DNA of 64,000 bases from Selaginella moellendorffii (lineage: Eukaryota; Plantae; Lycopodiophyta). The DNA lies in assembly GCF_000143415.4 (NCBI RefSeq), contig NW_003314265.1, positions 1,322,446-1,386,445 on the forward strand, in the 5' to 3' direction. The position numbers and the translations under genes were made by a program. This document shows, piece by piece, positions 3,446-16,600 of the stretch (the stretch's first letter is position 1; every line of letters begins with the position of its first letter). The notes beneath the pieces are model-generated. The model ran no database searches. It was not told the origin of the DNA and saw only the letters and a program-made list of their open reading frames with translations.

Positions 3446-4606
3446 TTCCTTGATGGAGTTTTTGTAAGTGGTTTAGAACCCAAAATAACCTCAATTCGAT
3501 GATTAACTTCATAGCTAAGAGGTAGCTCTGGTAGCAAATCCTTCAGGAAGATATCCTGATTCTACGCTAACAACTCTATTATCTTCTTTGGTATAGGATC
3601 AACCCTGTCATCGATTCGAATTAAGTCACCAACACCCTCAGCTTCCATTACTTGAACCCAAAAGGTCTGACATCCCTTCTTAGCTGCTTTTTGAGTGGCT
3701 CTTGTAGTCAGGAACTTAGCATCTTAATCCTTTGAGGAGTGTTTTTGCAACTGGAGGGACACATCAAGATGTCCTTCTGACTTCAATGTGATATGACTTT
3801 GTCTAGCACCATAAATCCCTTTAATATATTTGTTGAAGAAATCCATATCAAACACCATATGAAAGTCTGGTATCTTCAACACTACCAAGTCCACTCTTTC
3901 TTTCCACTTATATAATTTTATTGGAACATCACTCACAAATTTTTTGGCTACTTGCCCCCATTCTGCAAATTGGAAGTATATGGGCAACATTCAATCTTAA
4001 CAACTTAACTAAGTCTTCAGCTATCACACTCTGTGTAGCTCTTATGTTAATCATCACTCAGATTCGGTGTCCGCAGACAAAGCCTACCAAATGCATCAAC
4101 AAATCAGTGTTTGCATTAACTATGAGAAGAGCTTGAAGAAAGCAACAAAATTAACTCACCTCCTCTTTCTCATAGTCTGTATTGACAAACTTATCAACCC
4201 CTTCAATTTCACCACCACCATTTTCCCTCATGACATTAATACAAGACTTTGTCTTATCCTTGTTGGGACATTCTAAGGACCTATGTCCTGACTCTCCACA
4301 ATGGAAGCAATGACCCACAATACCCATTCTGCTAGAAGCAAGTTTTGTAAATTGCTACTGCTTGTACCCACCAGGAGGAGGAACAGAGAGCCTAGGACCA
4401 GAAGAAACTATTGGTAGTCTCCAACCACCACCACCTTTGTTAACCGTTGCTTGTGAGCCTCTAAGCTAGAACATTCCTTCCACCCTTTATTTCCGATCAC
4501 CTTGTTTATTCCCAGAATTCTTATTTGTCCGAGGTACCAGCATATGGCTGCTGATATTGTTCCATAAGCAAGTGACTAAAGGCAACTTGCTGCACTTCCA
4601 AGTATG

Positions 4607-6423
4607 TGTGAGACACAAAATCCCTAGGCCCCAAAGTGGAGCCGAAAGGGTGCCATGTGGTAGTGGCTGAAGCGAAAGCCAAACGAGTATAACACGTTTG
4701 GACTAAAAGCTCCGACTTGAAAATGTCGAGAGTGGGAGTGGAACTCCCAACGAAGTGCTCGAGGAATGAGCACGAAGCGAGCAATAAGCGAGGCTCCAAA
4801 AAGGGACCCAAAAGGACCAACACATGACACGTGGAAGTGTCCGAGATGGACCCGAGATGGACCCGAGATGGACCTAAGCTGGAGTCTGAAGTGGAGTCCG
4901 AGAAGGACCCCGAGATGGAGTCTGAGGTGGAGTCCAAGGTGGACATGAGATGGATCCGAGATTGAGTCCGAGACGGACCCAAGATGGAGTCCGAGATGGA
5001 CCCGAGATGGAGTCCAAGATGGACCCGAGATGGAGTCCGAGATGGACCCGAGGTGGAGTCCGAGATGGACCCGAGATGGAGTCCGAGATGGAGTCTGAAA
5101 TGGAGTCCGAGATGGAGTCTGAAATGGAGTCCGAGATGGACCCGAGATGGAGTCCAAAGTCGAGACCGAGACCGGGACCGAGACCGGGACCGAGACCGGG
5201 ACCGAGACCGGGACCGACACCGGGACCGAGACCGGGACCGAGATCGGGACCGAGACCGGGACCGAGACCGGGACCGACACCGGGACCGAGACCGGGACCG
5301 AGACCGAGACCAAGATCGGGACCGAGACCAAGACCGAGACCGAGCCCGAGCCCGAGCCCGAGCCCGAGTCTGAGTCCGAGTCCGAGTCCGAGTCCGAGTC
5401 CGAGTCCGAGTCCGAGTCCGAGTCCGAGTTCGAGTCTGAGAGGGTGAAAGCCCAAAGCGTTCGTCTCCCAGACCCTGGGGGGTTTGGTGAGCTCCAAAAG
5501 TATAGTAAGGGGGAGGACTGTAGTGGAGCCAGTTTGGCCAGGAAAGGCTAGTTTGGCCCAGGAAGGCTGGACCCAGTGTTGGGTGATGAGCTGCCCATTG
5601 TGAAGTCCAAGACTAGAGCGAACACGGACCGACAAGCGGGGTAGCTTGGTGAAGTGTTCAAGAGCCAGCTCTAGTTCCCCCGGGAGATCAACTGGCCGAT
5701 GCTCCCAGTCCAAGTGTGGGTGGCACTACCTACTTGGATACCTAGTGTGGCTCAATGGAACCTTGCTCTAAGCCCATGGCTAGAGCACCAAAAGGCGAGA
5801 GGTGGGGAGAGTACCCATGAGGCTTGCGTAAGGCCACAGTGTTCCGAAATGTTGGCCCAAAGTCCCAGATTCTGGAAAGGAAAAGGAGTAGCCCTCTAGT
5901 GTGGTGACAAGGGACACAGTCACATAGTAAGGAAGTCCTAGAGGACAGTTGGACTTAGTGGTCGGGCTTGTGGGCCTTGATCCAGTGGCAGTGTTAGTGA
6001 ACACGGCCATGGACAAGAAGGGACTTGGCAGGGATTGGAAAGGAGACATTGGGGAAGGCTATTCCCCATGTCTGCAGGCATCCTGAGGATGCTATAGAGT
6101 GGATCTGGGATAGCCACTCATGGATGGATGGCCTAATCTTTGAGAGACAGGATTGTAATGTAGGTGGTGTTGGACCACCGATGTGACCAAGGTGAATGGG
6201 CATGGCCTAGCGTAACAGGCTGGTATGTCAGTGGTACCTTGGGGTGTCGGTCATGGGATCGGACACGTGGAGCACTTGGGCCAAGTGCAAAAGTTGAGTG
6301 GCATGGATGCCATTCGCGGGGCTAGCATGAATGGGACTTATGGAGGTTGTGAATGAGACTCCTCCAAGTGGTCGGAGGTACGGTTAAGTGACTAAAGTAG
6401 AATGGAAAAATTAGTCGCTTACA
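4607..6423. mobile_element. Solo LTR (~1.8 kb) inserted in gag of the chromovirus
   Basis: TG...CA termini (TGTGAGAC...GCTTACA) flanked by perfect 5-bp TSD GTATG (4602-4606, 6424-6428); GC-rich relative to the host; no coding domains. Confidence 0.85.
4841..5438. repeat. Compound minisatellite array within the solo LTR
   Basis: Graded units CCGAGATGGAC/CCGAGATGGAGT (11-12 bp), then GACCGAGACCGG (12 bp), then GAGCCC/GAGTCC (6 bp). Confidence 0.9.
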
Positions 6424-7352
6424 GTATGTCTTCAGCTTAAACTTCAAAAAGTGAACTTAAACCCTTCATAAAATAATTCCGAGAATCTTTGTCACTCATA
6501 TTGGCAATCATAATGCACTTCTGAGCAAACGTATTAACATAATGCATAAGGTCCCTTCGCTGCTTTATCTGCCAGAACTCTGTGCGAAGTCTCAGGCCAA
6601 GATCATCCGGTAAGTATTCCTTATGGATACAAGACTACATCTTGGTCCAACTTCTAGTCTGCTCTTTTTCAGTACATACCTGGTGCCACCAAGTTTTGGC
6701 ATGATCAATGAGCAAAGACTGCATGTATGCAACTTTCGTATGATCATCTATGTCTGCCACTAGGAAATAGTTTTCCATATCGTAGGCCCAGTTTTTTAAA
6801 ACCTGAAAGTCTCGCATGCCTTTAAAATTAGGTGGTTTCGGAGGCTTAAACTTTGAAATTCGTGCAACTGGAGGCAGTTGCAGAACTTCATCGTCCTCAG
6901 AACTTGAAGAGGAGTCCAATTACTTAGGTTTAGCTAGTTTAGCTACCTTAGCTTTTTTCTTCTTTTTCTTGTTCTCCTTCTTCAATTTGCAAAGTTCCCT
7001 TTGCAAATTCTTGATCTTGACTTTCTAAGCCATATGCTGCAATGTTGCATCATCTGGCTCTTCCTCTTTTGACTCAGCCTCAACCTCTTCCACAACATTT
7101 TTGGTAGGAGTTTCCTCCTCTTGATTCTCCCGTCTAGAGGTTTTAGCTTCATCAGCACAGTTCCTTTTCACCATCTTGCTAGCTACATACATGCCTTTAT
7201 TAGTAACTGAACATGCATACAACATTCTTACCGAATGGTGCAATCCAACTAATCCTACATAGGTCACTTCGAATTTACTAAAAAAGTCTTTGTGTATGCA
7301 ACTTAAGTCAGAAAATCCAACAAAAGTTAGATAGGAATCACTAAGACAATTC

Positions 7353-7363
7353 CTCTGATACCA
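7353..7363 (-). promoter_or_regulatory. Primer binding site (initiator Met-tRNA) of the chromovirus
   Basis: TGGTATCAGAG on minus strand, 2 nt from LTR end ...CTACA. Confidence 0.85.
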
Positions 7364-7365
7364 AA

Positions 7366-8463
7366 TGTAGCACACATGAATTTGGAACTGAACTCCAAGC
7401 CCGTTACGCTACAAAATGAGGGTCTGATATAATTCCATGAGCACCAACTCCCTATATCTAGCACTTGTTTGCAAATGGTGTCAAACAATGTCTAACACAA
7501 TTTTGGCATATCGGTGGCGTAACGCAAGGAGGAGGGTACTCTACTGACTAGAGCAGCATGGAGCTTGGGCTTAGACTTAAGCTGAACGCAGAACAAGGAG
7601 CAACACAACCCAGTGGGAGCCAGACTAATATCTCAGATAGTCGAACATACATTCCAACCACTATCCCTACTATACATTTAGAATCGGGTATCGACCCCCC
7701 CCCCCCCCCCCCCCAAGGAACACATGTTCTGGGCTTTCACCCCAAGCCTCCTTTAGTATCAGGAATTAGTCTCTAGAACAAGCTTAAAACTTACTAAATA
7801 TGGAATATTCCTAGATTGTGAATTTGCATGGGACGAATACCATTGTGTTCAAGCCAATTTCTACATTCCATAGATATGCCAAATTAGCAAATCTAGACAC
7901 TTTCCATAATTAGTCAATAGAACAAAATGAGACCAATACAAAGGGCATAATAGCGAGGGTGTTTGGCAGACACGATAAGCTATTATCTAGCAAATGTTGA
8001 GGGACCAATCTCAATATTGTAGGGGTTCTTGATATTAGCAAATGCAAGTCAATAACATGAGTTTCTCAAACTAGGCCGAGTATGCTCCGTAAGAAACACA
8101 TATGGTTTCTACCTTATGTTTATCCGATTTAAGTGTAAGGTCATTGACCAATTTCTCAGAGTTCACCCAACCTAATATTATTCATTCCCTTTGGTTGCTT
8201 ATAACAAGTGGTTACGCTCAAACCATTATACCATTGCAATGCCGTCCTTTAGAGATATGTGGGAAACTCATGTAGACCCTAAGCATCATCCCAAGAATGT
8301 TAAATGGCAATCACCATAAAGTGATCAAACTAATAGTACATATTATCCCTAAGATTCTTGTAGAAGAGCTTTGACTGGAAGCAAGGATTGGTAGTAAGAG
8401 TATAAGGAGTTATACCATATGTTGTGAATGTGGTTATCAATTGAGTTTGATTGTTCAACTACA
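7366..8463 (-). repeat. Probable 5' LTR of the chromovirus (outer boundary tentative)
   Basis: Starts TGTAG next to the PBS; the inverted CTACA at 8459-8463 is a candidate outer end; partner LTR is outside the window. Confidence 0.5.
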
Positions 8464-10038: not shown

Positions 10039-10138
<100 letters not shown>

Positions 10139-10903
10139 TACCAACATATAATAATCAAATAACAATAATACAATAATAAATCATTGGTTTTCCATTAAGA
10201 TAAAAAAATTGTAGTTATATATGTCAATGTCAAAATATAATATGGTGGTAGCTAAAATAAAGGATTGTAAGAATTCAACTCTTCTCAAAAGAAATATCAT
10301 GCATCATAATGCCTTTGGCTCGTGAAGGTAAAAGGATTAAAATCTAAGCCTTAAGGAGCTTGGGGTTAAGTTGCCAATAAGATGCTGCTAGTATTATGCC
10401 TAAAGTTGGATGTTTTGACTGCTTTAATAGGCAACAACTAATTTTTACAGCCTTGAGTGGGTAATTTGACCAGCAATTTGAGATACCTTCACTTATAGTC
10501 AATGCATAGAGTGTAGAAAGTTGAATGTTCAACTATTGGAACTGCATAGAGCAAGTAGGACTTGAGCAAGCATTTGGTTGTGCTTCCAGATTTGAGTAAT
10601 TTATTTAACTCTTATATTCTTAACATTCCATATTTAAAGCTATGTAGTTTAAACCTTAGGAGATGTTTTCTATTGTTCATCTCTCTCACCTCTGGTTCGA
10701 TACTCTCCCTCCAATTCTTCACTAGAATCACTATAACAATATCTCTTTCTACAACAGCACCAACTCGGGAGGCGAGTGTGGTGTTGTTTCATCAACCGTG
10801 TTCAACATGCCCGTGCAAAACAGGGACAAATTCTGGTTTGTAGTTCTAAAGTCGAGAGAAAGCTAGCTGATTCACAGTTTTGTTGTTTTTTTTTCCTTGC
10901 AAG

Positions 10904-11537
10904 GTATAAAACCGACTATGGTCTCTTCCGCTTCTGCATCGCCGACTCGGAGCACGACGGCACGGAGCAGTACGAGTTCCTCGAGAATTGCTTCTGGAGC
11001 GCGGACAGGCAGAAGCAGCCGTGGCTGGTATTCATCTCTCACCGCGTCCTCGGCTACTCGTCCTGCTACGCTCCCGAGAACACCACCGGCGAGCCATTCG
11101 GCAGGGACAGCTTGGTGGCAAAAGTACAAGGTGGACCTCGCCTTCTACGGCCACATCCACAACTACGAGCGCACCTATCCAGTCTATAACGTGAGTGCTT
11201 TTGTTTTTGCCCATAGCTGGATCTTCTCTCATACTTTCGTGCAGCAAGTCCCTGCCAGTGACGAGAAAGATTTCTACTCAGGGACTTTCAACGGGACGAT
11301 TCACGTAGTTGCGGGAGGCGGTGGGTTTTGGCTGAGCCAGTTCCCGGAGAGCAAGCCATCGTGGAGCTTGAATCAGGACTGCGACTTTGGGTACACCAAG
11401 CTCACCTCGTTCAATCGCTCGTCGCTGCTGTTCGAGTACAAGAAGAGCCGCGATGGCGAAGTCTATGCATAACCAGTTTTGGATCCACAGGGAGTACAAG
11501 GCCCCTGGTTACCTCCGCCGAGAACTATCCAGCATAG
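10904..11537 (+). pseudogene. Purple acid phosphatase (nucleotide pyrophosphatase-type PAP) 3' fragment
   Basis: DYGLFRFCIADSEHD, DRQKQPWLVFISHRVLGYSS, WQKYKVDLAFYGHIHNYERT, GTIHVVAGGGG. Frameshift near 11110-11118, premature stop near 11470, 5' exons missing. Confidence 0.85.
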
Positions 11538-11763
11538 CGATCACGATCATCCAGTGACCATCTTCACGATCTTCCTGACTGCCAAAAATAAATATTCTTT
11601 TTGAAACTGCCCAGGTGAAATAGCATAGATAGCCCGGAAAAAAAGCGAAGGGCGATGAATCTTGTTTTCTTTAATGCCAGAACATCAAACAAGGATTGTT
11701 CCAAATCGATCCGCTGAGGAGGAGAAGCTCACGTCTCCCTCGGCCGTGACCTAGAAGCGCCTC

Positions 11764-12283
11764 ATGAGCATGAAGAAGACGGACTTGATTCGATGGCTCC
11801 AGCAACACAAGGTGAAATTGCCTCCGAAGGTAGCGTAAATCTCTCCCTCGCTCTTGTCCTCCACATTGCCATATTTAACTTGCAGAACCAGCTCAAGGAG
11901 TACTATCTGGGCATGACTCTGCAAAAACACGCAGAGCTCGGAGGAGGCCACCGGCATGTCCAAGTCGCCACCGAGACGCCACCCAAGCCAGCTCCCGAGA
12001 GGAAAAGGGTAACAAGAGAAAACCTTGGCATAACGAAAGAAACTTGTAGAGAGGGAGGCCGAGGCGAAGATCCAAGTCGCCTCATCCTTCCCGGTCCTCC
12101 CATCTAAGCCGGTTGCGATCCTATCTCCCGGGGAGGCCGCTGTTGGGATTTCTAGGCATGGGGCTCAGCAGGAGAAAGGTGCTCAGATTCATCTTTGTGG
12201 CTGCGATTGTGTTTGGCGTGCTTGGCTACGCGTACCAGGTGAGGAGATTCCAAAGGAGGAGGAAATGGTGCTGGCAAAGATGA
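11764..12283 (+). CDS. Candidate small LEM-like/HeH-domain, AT-hook, C-terminal TM protein (intact 140-aa gene or 5'-truncated pseudogene)
   Basis: Exons 11764-11829, 11886-12008, 12050-12283 joined by phase-0 GT-AG introns give MSMKKTDLIRWLQQHKVKLPPKNQLKEYYLGMTLQKH...ERKRRGRPRRRSKSP...FIFVAAIVFGVLGYAYQVRRFQRRRKWCWQR*. In-frame TAG at 11752 just upstream. Confidence 0.5.
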
Positions 12284-12767
12284 CTATATTGTTTGATGTT
12301 CTGGCATTAAAGAAAACAAGATTGATTAGAAAAAGATATTTTAGATCTTAATTCTTATATAGGGAGATTAGACAACATGTGTAAAGCGCGGAGGACGACC
12401 AAACATAAACAAACACAGTGTATAAGACCATGTCAAAGTCATTGAAGAGTGTGAACTCCATGCAATTAAGGCAGCCAAATTTGACAGTGATATGGTCAGA
12501 GGAGAAGAGTTTTCCTCAAAATTGCCATGCAAACGTAGACACGACAAAACAAAAATGTAGGCTCACTTCACTGAAATTCTCCCTTGCGTGTTGTATAGTA
12601 GCATCCCAATTGCTCAGTATAAAAGCCCATTCCCCCGCCACGATTTTCATTCATTCTTCCAATTTCATTCATCCATCCTCATATCATTTGATCTCGTCCC
12701 AATTGTTCCAGAGCTTATCGAGCTTGCTTTGAGAATCCTCGTTCCAGAGAGCTCGAGTTATAGATCC

Positions 12768-13427
12768 ATGGCCATGGCGCCCGCTTCGTCAATCCTGCTT
12801 CTGAGCACCATGATCATCGCATTCTTGGCCAGCGGAGTGCTCTCCGACCCAGATCCACTCCAGGACTTTTGCGTCGCGGATCTCACCGCATCACCGGGCG
12901 TCAATGGCTTCCCATGCAGGAACGCGTCCAGCGTCACGGTGGAGGACTTCATCTACAGAGAAATGGTGAATCCGGCCAACATCACCGCCATGAATCGCGC
13001 GGGCGCAGTGTTTGGAACCGTGCTGAGGTTCCCCGGGATCAACACCCTTGGCCTCTCCATGGCCAGGCTCGACTTGCTACCCGAGGGGATTATCGCGCCA
13101 CACACCCATCCCAGGGCCACGGAGATGGTGTACGTCGAGGAGGGGAGCGTATACGCCGCCATTGTCACCGCGGACAACCGCTTGTTTGCACAGGTGCTGA
13201 GCAGAGGCGAGGTGATGGTAATTCCGCGTGGATTGATCCACTGGCAGATGAATGTCGGCAGGAACAATGCCAAGATCATTGCTGCGCTCAACTCTCAGCT
13301 CGCGGGGACGCAATTTGTAGGGAGGTCCATGTTTGGATCGAGCCCCCAGGTGCCCGACGAGGTGCTAGAAAAGACCTTTTTTATCGACAACACTACCATC
13401 AATCAGGTCCGATCCGTGTTTGCTTGA
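12768..13427 (+). CDS. Germin-like protein (cupin), intronless, secreted
   Basis: Signal peptide, DPDPLQDFCVAD, PHTHPRATEM and PRGLIHWQMN germin boxes. Confidence 0.95.
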   Translation: MAMAPASSILLLSTMIIAFLASGVLSDPDPLQDFCVADLTASPGVNGFPCRNASSVTVEDFIYREMVNPANITAMNRAGAVFGTVLRFPGINTLGLSMARLDLLPEGIIAPHTHPRATEMVYVEEGSVYAAIVTADNRLFAQVLSRGEVMVIPRGLIHWQMNVGRNNAKIIAALNSQLAGTQFVGRSMFGSSPQVPDEVLEKTFFIDNTTINQVRSVFA

Positions 13428-15789
13428 TTTAATCTTCTTTGATCTTCCAAACTGAATGCACATTCAAATTCATTAAGTTTTCAATATTGGAAGGTTTTGT
13501 TTCTCTTTTTTAATTAATTTTTTCTATCTCAAAATTATTTAAGAGGATTAGCAAGTTTTGTTATATAATTTATTTTTACTATTTTGCTCATAAAATTCCT
13601 ATCCAAAACAAATTTTAATTGGGTCAAGTTTTTTTCAGTAATAATGTTTATTACCCTTAAAAATGTTTTTTAAAGTGTTCCTACAGTTCCTTATTACTTT
13701 TCTCTTTTTCATTAGAATTAAAGATATTATAGATATTTTGATATAACAATTTTTTATAAGTTATAATGGTTGTTAGATTATGTGCTATTAATTATTATTA
13801 TTATTATTTCTTTTAAAATTATATTGCATTAATTTTTATTTGTATTTTAAATAGACAAATCTTAATGCACTTAATTCTAATCCAATAGTTTTGATCTGTT
13901 ATTAATTATAGAACACTCAAACACAAGTATGTAAATGATTAGGGAGAACAAGCAATTTCAAACCCCAGTGCATTCTATAGATCTCAGCAAGATTAAATTA
14001 TCTAACTTGGACTTATTGAGCTTTGCAGTCAAAAGAAAAGTTGTTACAAGAAAATACTTTAATCTATAGTATGACATTTACCTCACATGGCAGTGATTAA
14101 ATCTATTTGTAGCAATGTTGGCTAAAGGTGGAGGAGTGCAAGATCATTTGAGCACATATATCAATCAATTTAGATTTATAAACTTAAATATAATTTGAAT
14201 AAATATTAATTTTAAATCATTAGCATTAGCCCTTGATTATAAAAGAATTGGATAAAGATGGAATTAAGAGATATTCTAGGAATATTTAATACAAAATAAG
14301 TGGCTAACAGATGAAGTAATAGATATCCTTAGCACAAGTGAGTAAATCAAGGATATGACAAGAACACAATGTTTGAAAGAAATTCTTTTCTTATTGCTAG
14401 TTGGACTTGTAGGTAATATAGGTTCTTTAATATTATTTTTTCTAATACAGTTTTTAAAAAGATATATTACTGAGATGATACCCTAAAGCATTTTAATTTG
14501 ACATTGATGTATAAAATTTATAAAAGTGGTTTTTGGAGTTTCAAGAGTAGTATTAAAGTATAGCAATGAATATGTAATTGCACATGGGTGCATCTTTTAT
14601 TTATATATGTGCAGATTTATTTTTTTATTTCCAATTGCACATAAAATATTATGCACAAAATTGAATATTGATTGCTATAATAGTAATCAAAATGGGGCAT
14701 TATAAAATTTGAATAGAATGTAGACAAACACTTCATGCATATATGCAACTATGTCATCTACTCTTTTTTTGAGTAATTCAATTCAATTCATGATCTATGA
14801 AATTAAAATATGTAAAACATAGAGAAAAAAGCAACACCACCCATCACCACACTATTGAAGATGATAAGCACCTCCCCAAACTTCCCAAGAACATAGTCTA
14901 TGTTTCAATTGTGGCCACAACACTTTACTACTCAAGATTATATTATGTTGCTAGCTCAATTGCATTAAGCACAGCAGGATCACACAATCTTTATCAATCT
15001 GTTGATAATCTCTTCAACTTATAGCTACTTTAGGATTCTACTCCCTTGGATCAAACCTTTGTTCTTGGTGAAGAACTTGACTGCCATGGTTTAGCTACAT
15101 TACAAATCAAATTTTAAAAACAAAAAAATAAGATGCTAATATGGCAAATATATTGGTGTGGATTAAGAATTCATATGTATATATGGCTTTACCAACTTGT
15201 TTGCATGGTTAATTTTATGACAATACTTTTTAGGGAATGTAAGATAATTAAAACTATCAACAAGAGCATTGTCTCCAAATGAAAAATAAGTGAGCATCCA
15301 GAGGTATGTTGTTTGCATTTATATGCATGTTAAATCAGCATGCAACACAAACTTTTTTTTATAAGCATTTTAATGTAAAAGAAATTTTCCCATAGATTCT
15401 GCAAAATAAAAATGTTGGGATAAACATTTAAGAAAAAAGTAATTAAAACTAACCTTTGAATACTAGTTAAGCTAGTTAAGGTTTTAGGACCTGGGGTGGC
15501 AAAAAGAACTATTAGACTGAATTGTTTTAACATATATGTTTAACTCATAAAATAAATGTTGAACACACCATATTTGCATATGAATATCTTTTTCTTACTA
15601 TTTTCTATAATTGTAAAGTTATAATGAACCAAGAAGAGACAAAATTAACTTTGTTACTCGGTTCCAAATTCTGCTATGAAACTCCTTGGTATGTATAAAG
15701 TACTAATCTCCCAAACACCAATCCATTCCATCTCATTCATTTAATTAAAGCTTGTGTGATCAGTTCTGTCCCTATTGTAGCCAAATGAT

Positions 15790-16109
15790 ATGGCTGTATC
15801 CAAAATTATATTCTTCATGTTCTTCACATTCTTGGCTGTTCCCAGATCCACTCCAAGACTTTTGCATTGGAGACATAAGTGTCACGAGCATCAATGGCTT
15901 CCCATGCAGGAACGTGTCCAATGGATGACTTCATCTCTCATGAACTCCTCCAACACCACAAATATGGATCACTTTGGCATGATCTTTTGCACATCTGGGC
16001 CTCAATACTCTGGACCTCATCACTAGGCTTGATTTCCTTCCTAAGGGCACCCATCCTAGAGCCTTGGAGATGGTGTACGTCGAGGAGGGGAGCATCTACG
16101 CCGCCATTG
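15790..16109 (+). pseudogene. Germin-like pseudogene truncated by a copia LTR
   Basis: DNA identity to 12848-13165 (CCCAGATCCACTCCAAGACTTTTGC; AATGGCTTCCCATGCAGGAACG; GGAGATGGTGTACGTCGAGGAGGGGAGC) with deletions and frameshifts. Confidence 0.85.
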
Positions 16110-16600
16110 TGTTGGAGCCGAAATCCAAGGTTTGATAGGCATCTTGAATCATGGAGAACAAGGGCCTCATTCTGTGGCAAATTTCAGGAGAAATTCCCGG
16201 ACATAGTTAGTATATAGCTAGTGTTTCATTCTTCTTTCAATAAGCAGTTGTTTCTAATTTCCTTCTGAAAAGATCTTGTTCATTCTTTGCTCTCATTCTG
16301 TCCCTTTGTCATGATATTAGAGCAAGATCAAAAGGATGGAAATGCTGCCATTGTGACTTTCTCAAATGGCCATTCCATTTCCACTTTTGATGGATCTGGA
16401 AACTTCTCAAGCTAGAGGTACCAAATGGAGCTCATCCTCAAAGGTGAGGGAGTTTGGGGCATTGTCAATGGCGATGAGCTGAAGCCAGGAGCTGATGCAA
16501 GCTATCAGAATGTGGATACCTAGAGTTGGCATGAGGACAAGGGTACAGCAACAATCAAGCTCATGGTGATGGAGAGCTAAACTAATAACAAATAAGAACC
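16110..16600 (+). mobile_element. Ty1/copia remnant: LTR, degenerate PBS and gag N-terminus
   Basis: TGTTGG...TGTCA (16110-16311), PBS-like TGATATTAGAGC (16312-16323), then FDGSGNFSS*RYQMELILKGEGVWGIVNG typical of a copia gag start; 3' extent uncertain. Confidence 0.7.

Follow-up and report, generated by a model that had tools for sequence, protein, structure and literature searches.

A probable unannotated third copy of a Selaginella-only orphan gene on a duplicated phosphatase–germin segment

We analysed a 64-kb stretch of the Selaginella moellendorffii genome (the window) for a small spliced gene on its forward strand, here called gene X. Our preferred interpretation, to which we assign a probability of about 60%, is that window positions 11655-12371 hold an unannotated third copy of a small orphan family confined to Selaginella moellendorffii, of which SELMODRAFT_406014 and SELMODRAFT_414039 are the annotated members. 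The sequence comparisons show that a cassette of ~3.5 kb consisting of purple acid phosphatase (PAP) sequence, gene X and a germin-like gene was segmentally duplicated, cutting the PAP gene and giving rise to the window copy. That copy is damaged by a 35-nt insertion behind the upstream ATG of the paralogue models, a GAG-to-TAG change and the shortening of both introns, with the core frame kept. Should the family be translated, there are about even odds that its product is a very basic protein of 128-140 residues with a helix-loop-helix, a basic AT-hook-like linker and a C-terminal membrane helix, and thus tail-anchored. An initial annotation of this DNA had gone further and proposed a LAP2/emerin-like protein of the inner nuclear membrane; its claim of LEM-like homology to LAP2 is not established by the comparisons reported below. 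The annotation of GCA_000143415.2 passes from the C-terminal PAP fragment (10807-11472) to the germin gene (12768-13427) with no gene call in between. Window coordinates are those of the extracted window locus (L001; scaffold GL377569.1, ~1.33 Mb, GCA_000143415.2) plus 2767.

A check of the sequence from the ATG at 11764 recovers a frame of 140 codons and a stop, spliced from three exons on the forward strand through two phase-0 GT-AG introns. This is the frame that the initial annotation had proposed, and the JGI models of the paralogues match it. The parts of the gene model, including those specific to the JGI-type version, are the following.

11764-11829, forward strand: exon 1, MSMKKTDLIRWLQQHKVKLPPK, encoding helix 1 and the loop of the two-helix module
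11830-11885, forward strand: intron 1, 56 nt, GT..AG, phase 0
11886-12008, forward strand: exon 2, NQLKEYYLGMTLQKHAELGG...PAPERKR, encoding helix 2 and then a disordered linker
12009-12049, forward strand: intron 2, 41 nt, GT..AG, phase 0
12050-12283, forward strand: exon 3 as drawn in the initial annotation
12050-12238, forward strand: exon 3 of the JGI-type model, with the AT-hook-like basic motif KR/RGRPRRR (slash, splice junction), a linker rich in S, P and R, and the hydrophobic helix VLRFIFVAAIVFGVLGYAY
12239-12283, forward strand: read-through tail VRRFQRRRKWCWQR and stop, used in the initial annotation and equal to the start of intron 3 in the JGI-type model
12239-12362, forward strand: intron 3 of the JGI-type model, 124 nt, phase 0, CAG/GTGAGG ... 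TTATATAG/G, holding the right arm of an inverted repeat
12363-12371, forward strand: terminal mini-exon of the JGI-type model, GGA GAT TAG (GD and stop)

Exons 1, 2 and 3 lie in three different genomic frames, and the frame of exon 3 is shut just upstream by a TAG that contains the acceptor AG of intron 2. Splicing creates the junctions PPK/NQL and KR/RGRPRRR in the window product. The third intron, which is used by the paralogue models and was missing from the initial annotation, has its window equivalent at 12239-12362, with the donor at 12239 and the acceptor ...TATAG/G at 12362. Built from window coordinates, the JGI-type model is 128 aa long, and 121 of its residues are identical to SELMODRAFT_406014 residues 26-150, with one 3-residue indel. 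Its tail beyond the transmembrane (TM) helix measures 3 residues, as against 15 with read-through. As the initial annotation had cautioned, a TAG stands in frame at 11752-11754, 12 nt 5′ of the ATG at 11764.

Fold and library searches were run with the paralogue SELMODRAFT_406014, and the window exons were searched separately. Exon 2 alone matches two annotated S. moellendorffii hypothetical proteins, at E-values of 4e-13 and 5e-11. SELMODRAFT_406014 (P0001; EFJ34564.1, UniProt D8R0D7) has 150 aa and is encoded on the same scaffold, 2.18 Mb away (locus L002, at ~3.5078 Mb), between an intact 722-aa PAP gene upstream and a germin gene. SELMODRAFT_414039 (P0002; EFJ25236.1, UniProt D8RRF6) has 106 aa and lies on scaffold GL377587.1 (locus L003, at ~1.2125 Mb), likewise upstream of a germin gene; an annotated PAP gene is found upstream at L002 only. 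Both proteins carry the junction ...LPPK/NQLKEYY..., and SELMODRAFT_406014 also carries ...PERKR/RGRPRRR..., its third intron giving the C-terminus ...GYAYQGD. The suspicion voiced earlier, that the window copy has decayed after duplication of a gene better preserved elsewhere, was therefore well founded, as SELMODRAFT_406014 is more intact and stands beside an intact PAP gene.

The window copy shares with both paralogues its exon-intron structure, the downstream germin gene and upstream PAP-derived sequence, and with SELMODRAFT_406014 the RGRP motif and the TM helix. From Met-11764 its frame is unbroken and ~97% identical to SELMODRAFT_406014. Relative to that protein it has three extra linker residues (TPP), and the L002 locus shows an in-frame 9-nt deletion. 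The introns differ more: intron 1 measures 56 nt in the window copy and 139-140 nt in the two paralogues, and intron 2 measures 41 nt versus 52-53 nt. A three-way alignment of the copies attributes these differences to window-specific deletions of 83-84 nt in intron 1 and 11-12 nt in intron 2. An intron of 41 nt is short even for S. moellendorffii, whose intron length distribution groups with those of fungi (PMC6157073).

How far the open frame itself speaks for a gene was judged against 620-nt windows across the 64-kb sequence, allowing for an ATG-to-stop frame with up to two phase-0 GT..AG introns of 40-150 nt. A spliceable frame of at least 140 codons occurs in 10% of these windows (median 96.5 codons), so a frame of this length is by itself not above chance. 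We nevertheless rate it above chance because the JGI paralogue models share both introns, the frame shows periodicity in GC content at third codon positions (GC3), and the exons are GC-richer than the introns. Specifically, GC1/GC2/GC3 is 0.56/0.46/0.69 for the spliced frame (shuffle P 0.0015, maximum over three phases) and 0.55/0.44/0.75 for the neighbouring germin gene; in this gene-dense region, the periodicity places the frame within the top 10.5% of same-size windows. Exon GC is 0.48-0.59 and intron GC 0.32-0.46.

Comparing the three copies pairwise, we found divergences of 2.2-3.4% in exons, 2.4-7.3% in introns, 2.7-3.3% in the spacer between gene X and germin, and 0.9-1.4% in the germin coding sequence. 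The ratio pN/pS is 0.24-0.41 for gene X and 0.26-0.39 for germin, from few substitutions. Of the 13-14 exon substitution events, 7 are synonymous, compared to a neutral expectation of 23-35% (P 0.017-0.18, depending on the assumed neutral share). These counts would fit mild purifying selection on gene X, in numbers too small to be conclusive. Taken together, the evidence that the spliced frame is coding is moderate.

Several observations weigh against a genuine gene family. Besides the 10% of control windows that offer an equally long frame, the exons diverge no less than the adjoining intergenic DNA, and the SELMODRAFT gene models may be purely ab initio. Two of the three copies carry lesions. 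At L003, exon 2 has lost 1 nt (at the position aligned to window ~11973), which frameshifts SELMODRAFT_414039; its annotated 106-aa product ends out of frame, with neither RGRP motif nor TM helix, and the model is pseudogene-like. In the window, a GAG of the paralogues reads TAG at 11752-11754, breaking the 5′ extension. No homologue outside S. moellendorffii was found with phmmer among 1.84 billion representative proteins, a library of a size at which a 40-residue domain of ~30% identity is undetectable, leaving remote homology undetected; homologues conserving the frame beyond the species were likewise absent from it. Word-index searches with exon 2, the full protein and residues 20-100 returned only SELMODRAFT_406014 and SELMODRAFT_414039. 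The search with residues 20-100, which span both junctions, allowed short fragments and gave no transcript-derived fragment. For the family, only GenBank EFJ and UniProt accessions are on record; the absence of transcript-derived entries carries little weight, because the evident germin gene is also known only from its genome record.

The strongest rival explanation follows from these points. It holds that there is no protein at all, that ab initio prediction produced the JGI models as artefacts in conserved, recently duplicated intergenic DNA between PAP and germin, possibly a germin promoter or an untranslated transcript, and that the helix-loop-helix, the basic run and the hydrophobic stretch arose by chance in one spliceable frame. 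For this orphan family no relatives are detectable and no Pfam domain exceeds the threshold, and splice sites shared between copies that are 97-98% similar prove nothing. Set against this are the GC3 periodicity, which follows exactly the proposed frame through three genomic frames (P 0.0015), the AT-richer introns and the excess of synonymous changes. A terminal exon of two codons, as in the JGI model, would be unusual for a purely ab initio call, and AlphaFold2 (AF2) predicts confident helices from the single sequence. On balance, we regard the absence of any protein as unlikely, though it is an alternative to be taken seriously. A known non-coding RNA was considered as well and set aside, as Rfam returned no match at E up to 1 for window positions 11300-12700. 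Our literature search on the locus tags SELMODRAFT_406014 and SELMODRAFT_414039 found no publications.

If the orphan family is translated, the features of its product can be described from predictions. The product is very basic (pI 11.6-11.9). Its hydrophobic segment (FIFVAAIVFGVLGYAY / VLRFIFVAAIVFGVLGYAY) reaches a Kyte-Doolittle 19-mer maximum of 2.07. AF2, run on the single sequence of SELMODRAFT_406014, predicts helices at residues 22-27, 30-39 and 51-64 (block pLDDT 81-89 over residues 21-60), a basic linker that is disordered, and a helix at the C-terminus, residues 126-147 of 150 (pLDDT 81-91). Hydropathy and AF2 thus agree on a single C-terminal TM helix with a short tail, the tail-anchor layout of LAP2beta and emerin. 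Residues 62-68 of the window model form the motif KRRGRPR, which is kept in SELMODRAFT_406014, contains the RGRP core of AT-hooks and is too short for significance. Both the RGRP motif and the C-terminal hydrophobic segment had been pointed out in the initial annotation. Like AT-hook proteins (HMGA, plant AHL), the product has an RGRP core flanked by Arg/Lys (KRRGRPRRR); unlike them, it has a single motif, set in an Arg-rich stretch, and lacks PPC/DUF296 or another companion domain.

Such a protein would most likely be inserted post-translationally into the membrane of the endoplasmic reticulum (ER) or nuclear envelope, with an N-terminal basic arm of ~100 residues on the cytosolic or nucleoplasmic side and a putative role in nucleic-acid binding. 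Its destination may be set by the C-terminus: the QGD ending would fit a tail anchor of the ER or nuclear envelope, and the strongly basic read-through ending QVRRFQRRRKWCWQR would favour the outer membrane of plastids or mitochondria. In tail-anchored proteins, a strongly basic C-terminal tail favours targeting to organelle outer membranes rather than to the ER or nuclear envelope.

Interest in the LAP2/emerin comparison comes from a gap in plants. Published work assigns LEM-like and MSC domains to the last eukaryotic common ancestor, and plants have no recognised counterpart of the LEM and helix-extended-helix (HeH) proteins that tether chromatin in animals, fungi and amoebae (PMC5287096, PMC5630835); the initial annotation had noted such a lack of LEM-domain proteins for angiosperms. 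The corresponding explanation is that gene X encodes a LAP2/emerin-like inner-nuclear-membrane protein, in which a LEM-like/HeH module and the AT-hook bind DNA, the tail anchor sits in the envelope, and chromatin is tethered in a lycophyte. In its layout, the predicted product does resemble LAP2beta and emerin: a small module of two helices stands at the N-terminus, the middle is basic and unstructured, and a single TM helix near the C-terminus leaves only a very short tail. However, the product lacks a canonical LEM domain, a lamin- or BAF-binding region and an MSC domain, and has 128-150 residues as against several hundred in LAP2beta.

Profile searches bear on this explanation from both sides. 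Thymopoietin (PF08198), the LEM-like family, is the sole Pfam family reported for every version of the N-terminus, with E-values of 0.03-0.5, which are not independent evidence, as the peptide had been chosen in the initial annotation for that very likeness. The scores are 10.5 bits for full-length SELMODRAFT_406014, 13.0 bits for SELMODRAFT_414039 and 14.2-14.3 bits for the trimmed N-terminus, half of the gathering cut-off (28.6) at best, and the match covers only profile positions 19-42 of 48, that is, the loop and second helix. With E allowed up to 10, no Pfam match to LEM (PF03020), HeH (PF12949) or SAP (PF02037) was reported for SELMODRAFT_406014, SELMODRAFT_414039 or the N-terminal peptide, though the HMMER filters may hide matches with E above ~0.1; no match to the Rho_N profile was reported either. 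The profile comparison proposed with the LAP2/emerin claim thus yielded no significant match to Thymopoietin, HeH, LEM or SAP. As for the MSC domain, no Pfam match beyond Thymopoietin was obtained, and the single hydrophobic segment in 128-150 residues differs from the two TM helices of MAN1/LEM2/Src1/Heh.

Direct sequence comparison tells the same way. Searching all PDB sequences with phmmer at E up to 10, using SELMODRAFT_406014 and its residues 24-70, we retrieved no LAP2 or thymopoietin chain. The best matches were the designed consensus TPR protein CTPR3 (14.6 bits), methylglyoxal synthase (13.9 bits; KKDDLVRWVQKHAGKL) and the neck repeats of DC-SIGNR. Since TPR and methylglyoxal synthase score as well on the same peptide, matches of ~14 bits to unrelated folds are background for this N-terminus. 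In the 1.84-billion-protein search, SELMODRAFT_406014 matched its paralogue (E 2e-42) and, besides it, three long proteins built of repeats, one a Ser/Pro-rich tandem-repeat protein and two of them TPR proteins with E-values of 1.7e-5 (P0004) and 3.5e-4 (P0005). The TPR scores are high because the repeat ...AIELDPKxAxAYYNLGxALQxKGD... resembles ...VELPPKNQLKEYYLGMALQKHAELGG and is summed over five repeats, and from their sequences we read all three matches as artefacts of composition or repeats. The mimicry of a TPR repeat by VELPPKNQLKEYYLGMALQKHAELGG is in itself a caution against taking short helix-loop-helix similarity as homology.

AF2 gives two helices joined by a loop of ~11 residues (pLDDT 81-89), a loop length that we take to be closer to LEM-type than to SAP-type HeH motifs. 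For the full-length model, the head of the Foldseek list against PDB is dominated by HeH-type folds, namely YqbF, the MKL1 SAP domain, the C-terminal domains of MANF and CDNF, the Rho N-terminal domain, the 3′hExo SAP domain and the emerin LEM domain, all non-significant (best E 0.85). The emerin LEM domain (6ghd_G) is placed at a TM-score of 0.71 normalised to the 45-residue target, with a root-mean-square deviation of 2.1 Å over 41 columns, again non-significant. When residues 22-72 of SELMODRAFT_406014 were folded alone, pLDDT fell to 68.8 and Foldseek found no match in PDB. The structural check suggested in the initial annotation therefore produced no significant neighbour, and the ranking offers a hint of HeH-class shape, not of homology, in which LEM-like, SAP and Rho-N modules are indistinguishable at the level of the model. 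To SAP, Rho-N and HeH modules in general, the likeness consists of a predicted helix-loop-helix of ~35 residues and these non-significant neighbours, and the difference of the missing profile match and an isolated-domain model with no structural neighbour.

Membership of the LEM-like domain class is thus not borne out by the Thymopoietin scores of 10.5-14.3 bits, the PDB search or Foldseek. A family confined to one lycophyte species would moreover be unexpected for a core nuclear-envelope tether, its similarity to LAP2 is no better than to TPR repeats, and the strongly basic read-through tail points away from the nuclear envelope. We consider a LAP2/emerin-like tether improbable. A related and bolder idea is that of a young, lycophyte-specific, tail-anchored DNA-binding protein that ties chromatin to the nuclear envelope through its HeH and AT-hook, and is the first plant analogue of LAP2/emerin, whether arisen de novo or as a diverged LEM-like relic; this we regard as a long shot. 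A genuine plant LEM/HeH tether, if true, would raise the issue of how plants anchor their chromatin at the nuclear envelope, and the present evidence stays below that level.

The origin of the window copy, preferred here as a third member of the orphan family, can be followed in the flanking sequence. The duplicated segment and its neighbouring genes are the following.

10735-14197, forward strand: duplicated block comprising the PAP 3′ end, gene X, the germin-like gene and ~770 bp downstream, matched by blastn to L002 3965-7569 and L003 ~4446-7818
10807-11472, forward strand: truncated PAP remnant with the C-terminal domain only (Pfam Metallophos_C E 1.2e-14), annotated as a 158-aa product
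12768-13427, forward strand: intact germin-like protein gene, 219 aa (Pfam Cupin_1 E 8e-40), the downstream neighbour at all three loci

The PAP-X-germin cassette is present at three or more loci, with ~97% identity over ~3.5 kb and mismatches of 1-5% by segment. Since blastn homology of the block ends inside the PAP gene, the breakpoint accounts for the PAP pseudogene of the window; that such a pseudogene lies next to gene X had been seen earlier, and its sole Metallophos_C match confirms it. By tblastn, no further gene X copies are found in the 64-kb window.

The window copy is enclosed by a 38-nt inverted repeat that the initial annotation had overlooked, with arms at 11655-11692 and 12289-12326 that are 97% complementary (0 chance matches in 100 shuffles). 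Its parts and the adjoining 5′ sequence are listed here.

11655-11657, forward strand: ATG that starts the JGI paralogue models (MRIVPNRS...), cut off from its frame by the insertion in the window according to the three-way alignment
11658-11692, forward strand: insertion of 35 nt that reverse-complements 12289-12323 exactly, forms the left arm and is missing in both paralogues
11693-11763, forward strand: 5′ extension, part of the coding sequence in the JGI model of the paralogue and probably 5′ untranslated region (UTR)
12289-12326, forward strand: right arm of the inverted repeat, ancestral, present in L003 and lacking 9 nt in L002

In the three-way alignment, both paralogues read ...GCGATG-A-GGATTGTT..., and the window reads ...GCGATG-[35 nt]-GGATTGTT.... 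The template of the insertion lies ~600 nt downstream, 3′ of the gene X frame, and is common to all copies. By this alignment, the 35 nt are an inverted, templated insertion of the filler type that the window copy alone carries, and they look like the templated filler left by double-strand-break repair. A miniature inverted-repeat transposable element or Pack-type element, in which 38-nt terminal inverted repeats would bound a 672-bp mobile unit carrying the open frame, is suggested by the near-perfect arms around the model and can be dismissed, as the three-way alignment shows the left arm to be a window-specific insertion missing at two paralogous loci whose bases otherwise align one to one, the right arm belongs to the ancestral flank, no target-site duplication is seen at the window element and no second copy within the window, and every copy sits in the PAP-X-germin context of a segmental duplication, not of transposition.

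Together, the insertion and the GAG-to-TAG change abolish the N-terminal extension, 25 residues long in the JGI model, leaving two short upstream open reading frames (ORFs). The extension shows no GC3 periodicity (0.52/0.70/0.57) and diverges by 5.6%, versus 2.2% in the exons; it may be 5′ UTR, with Met-11764 as the true start. In the window copy, a potential 38-bp stem pairs the 5′ leader with intron 3. Because of the two upstream ORFs, the 41-nt intron and this stem, the window copy is probably poorly expressed or already a pseudogene. Any translation would be weak, with two upstream ORFs preceding the main ATG and intron 2 of only 41 nt, making the copy either a weakly translated paralogue or a young pseudogene.

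Whatever the fate of its product, the locus fills a gap in annotation with an unannotated third orphan-gene copy, and it documents a dated segmental duplication that truncated one gene and carried two others, as well as a clear templated inverted insertion. For work on orphan or de novo genes in Selaginella, the SELMODRAFT_406014 family makes a reasonable candidate.

Additional features were noted around the duplicated block. A second germin-like fragment at 16048-16110, 90% identical over 63 nt to 13103-13165, lies 2.9 kb downstream of the first, and L002 also has extra cupin sequences, so that the loci represent small clusters of germin-like genes. An AT-rich stretch (~30% GC, 8-10 kb) directly 5′ of the duplication breakpoint contains a long (TA)n microsatellite (10042-10134), and a comparably AT-rich stretch is found at 14-16 kb.

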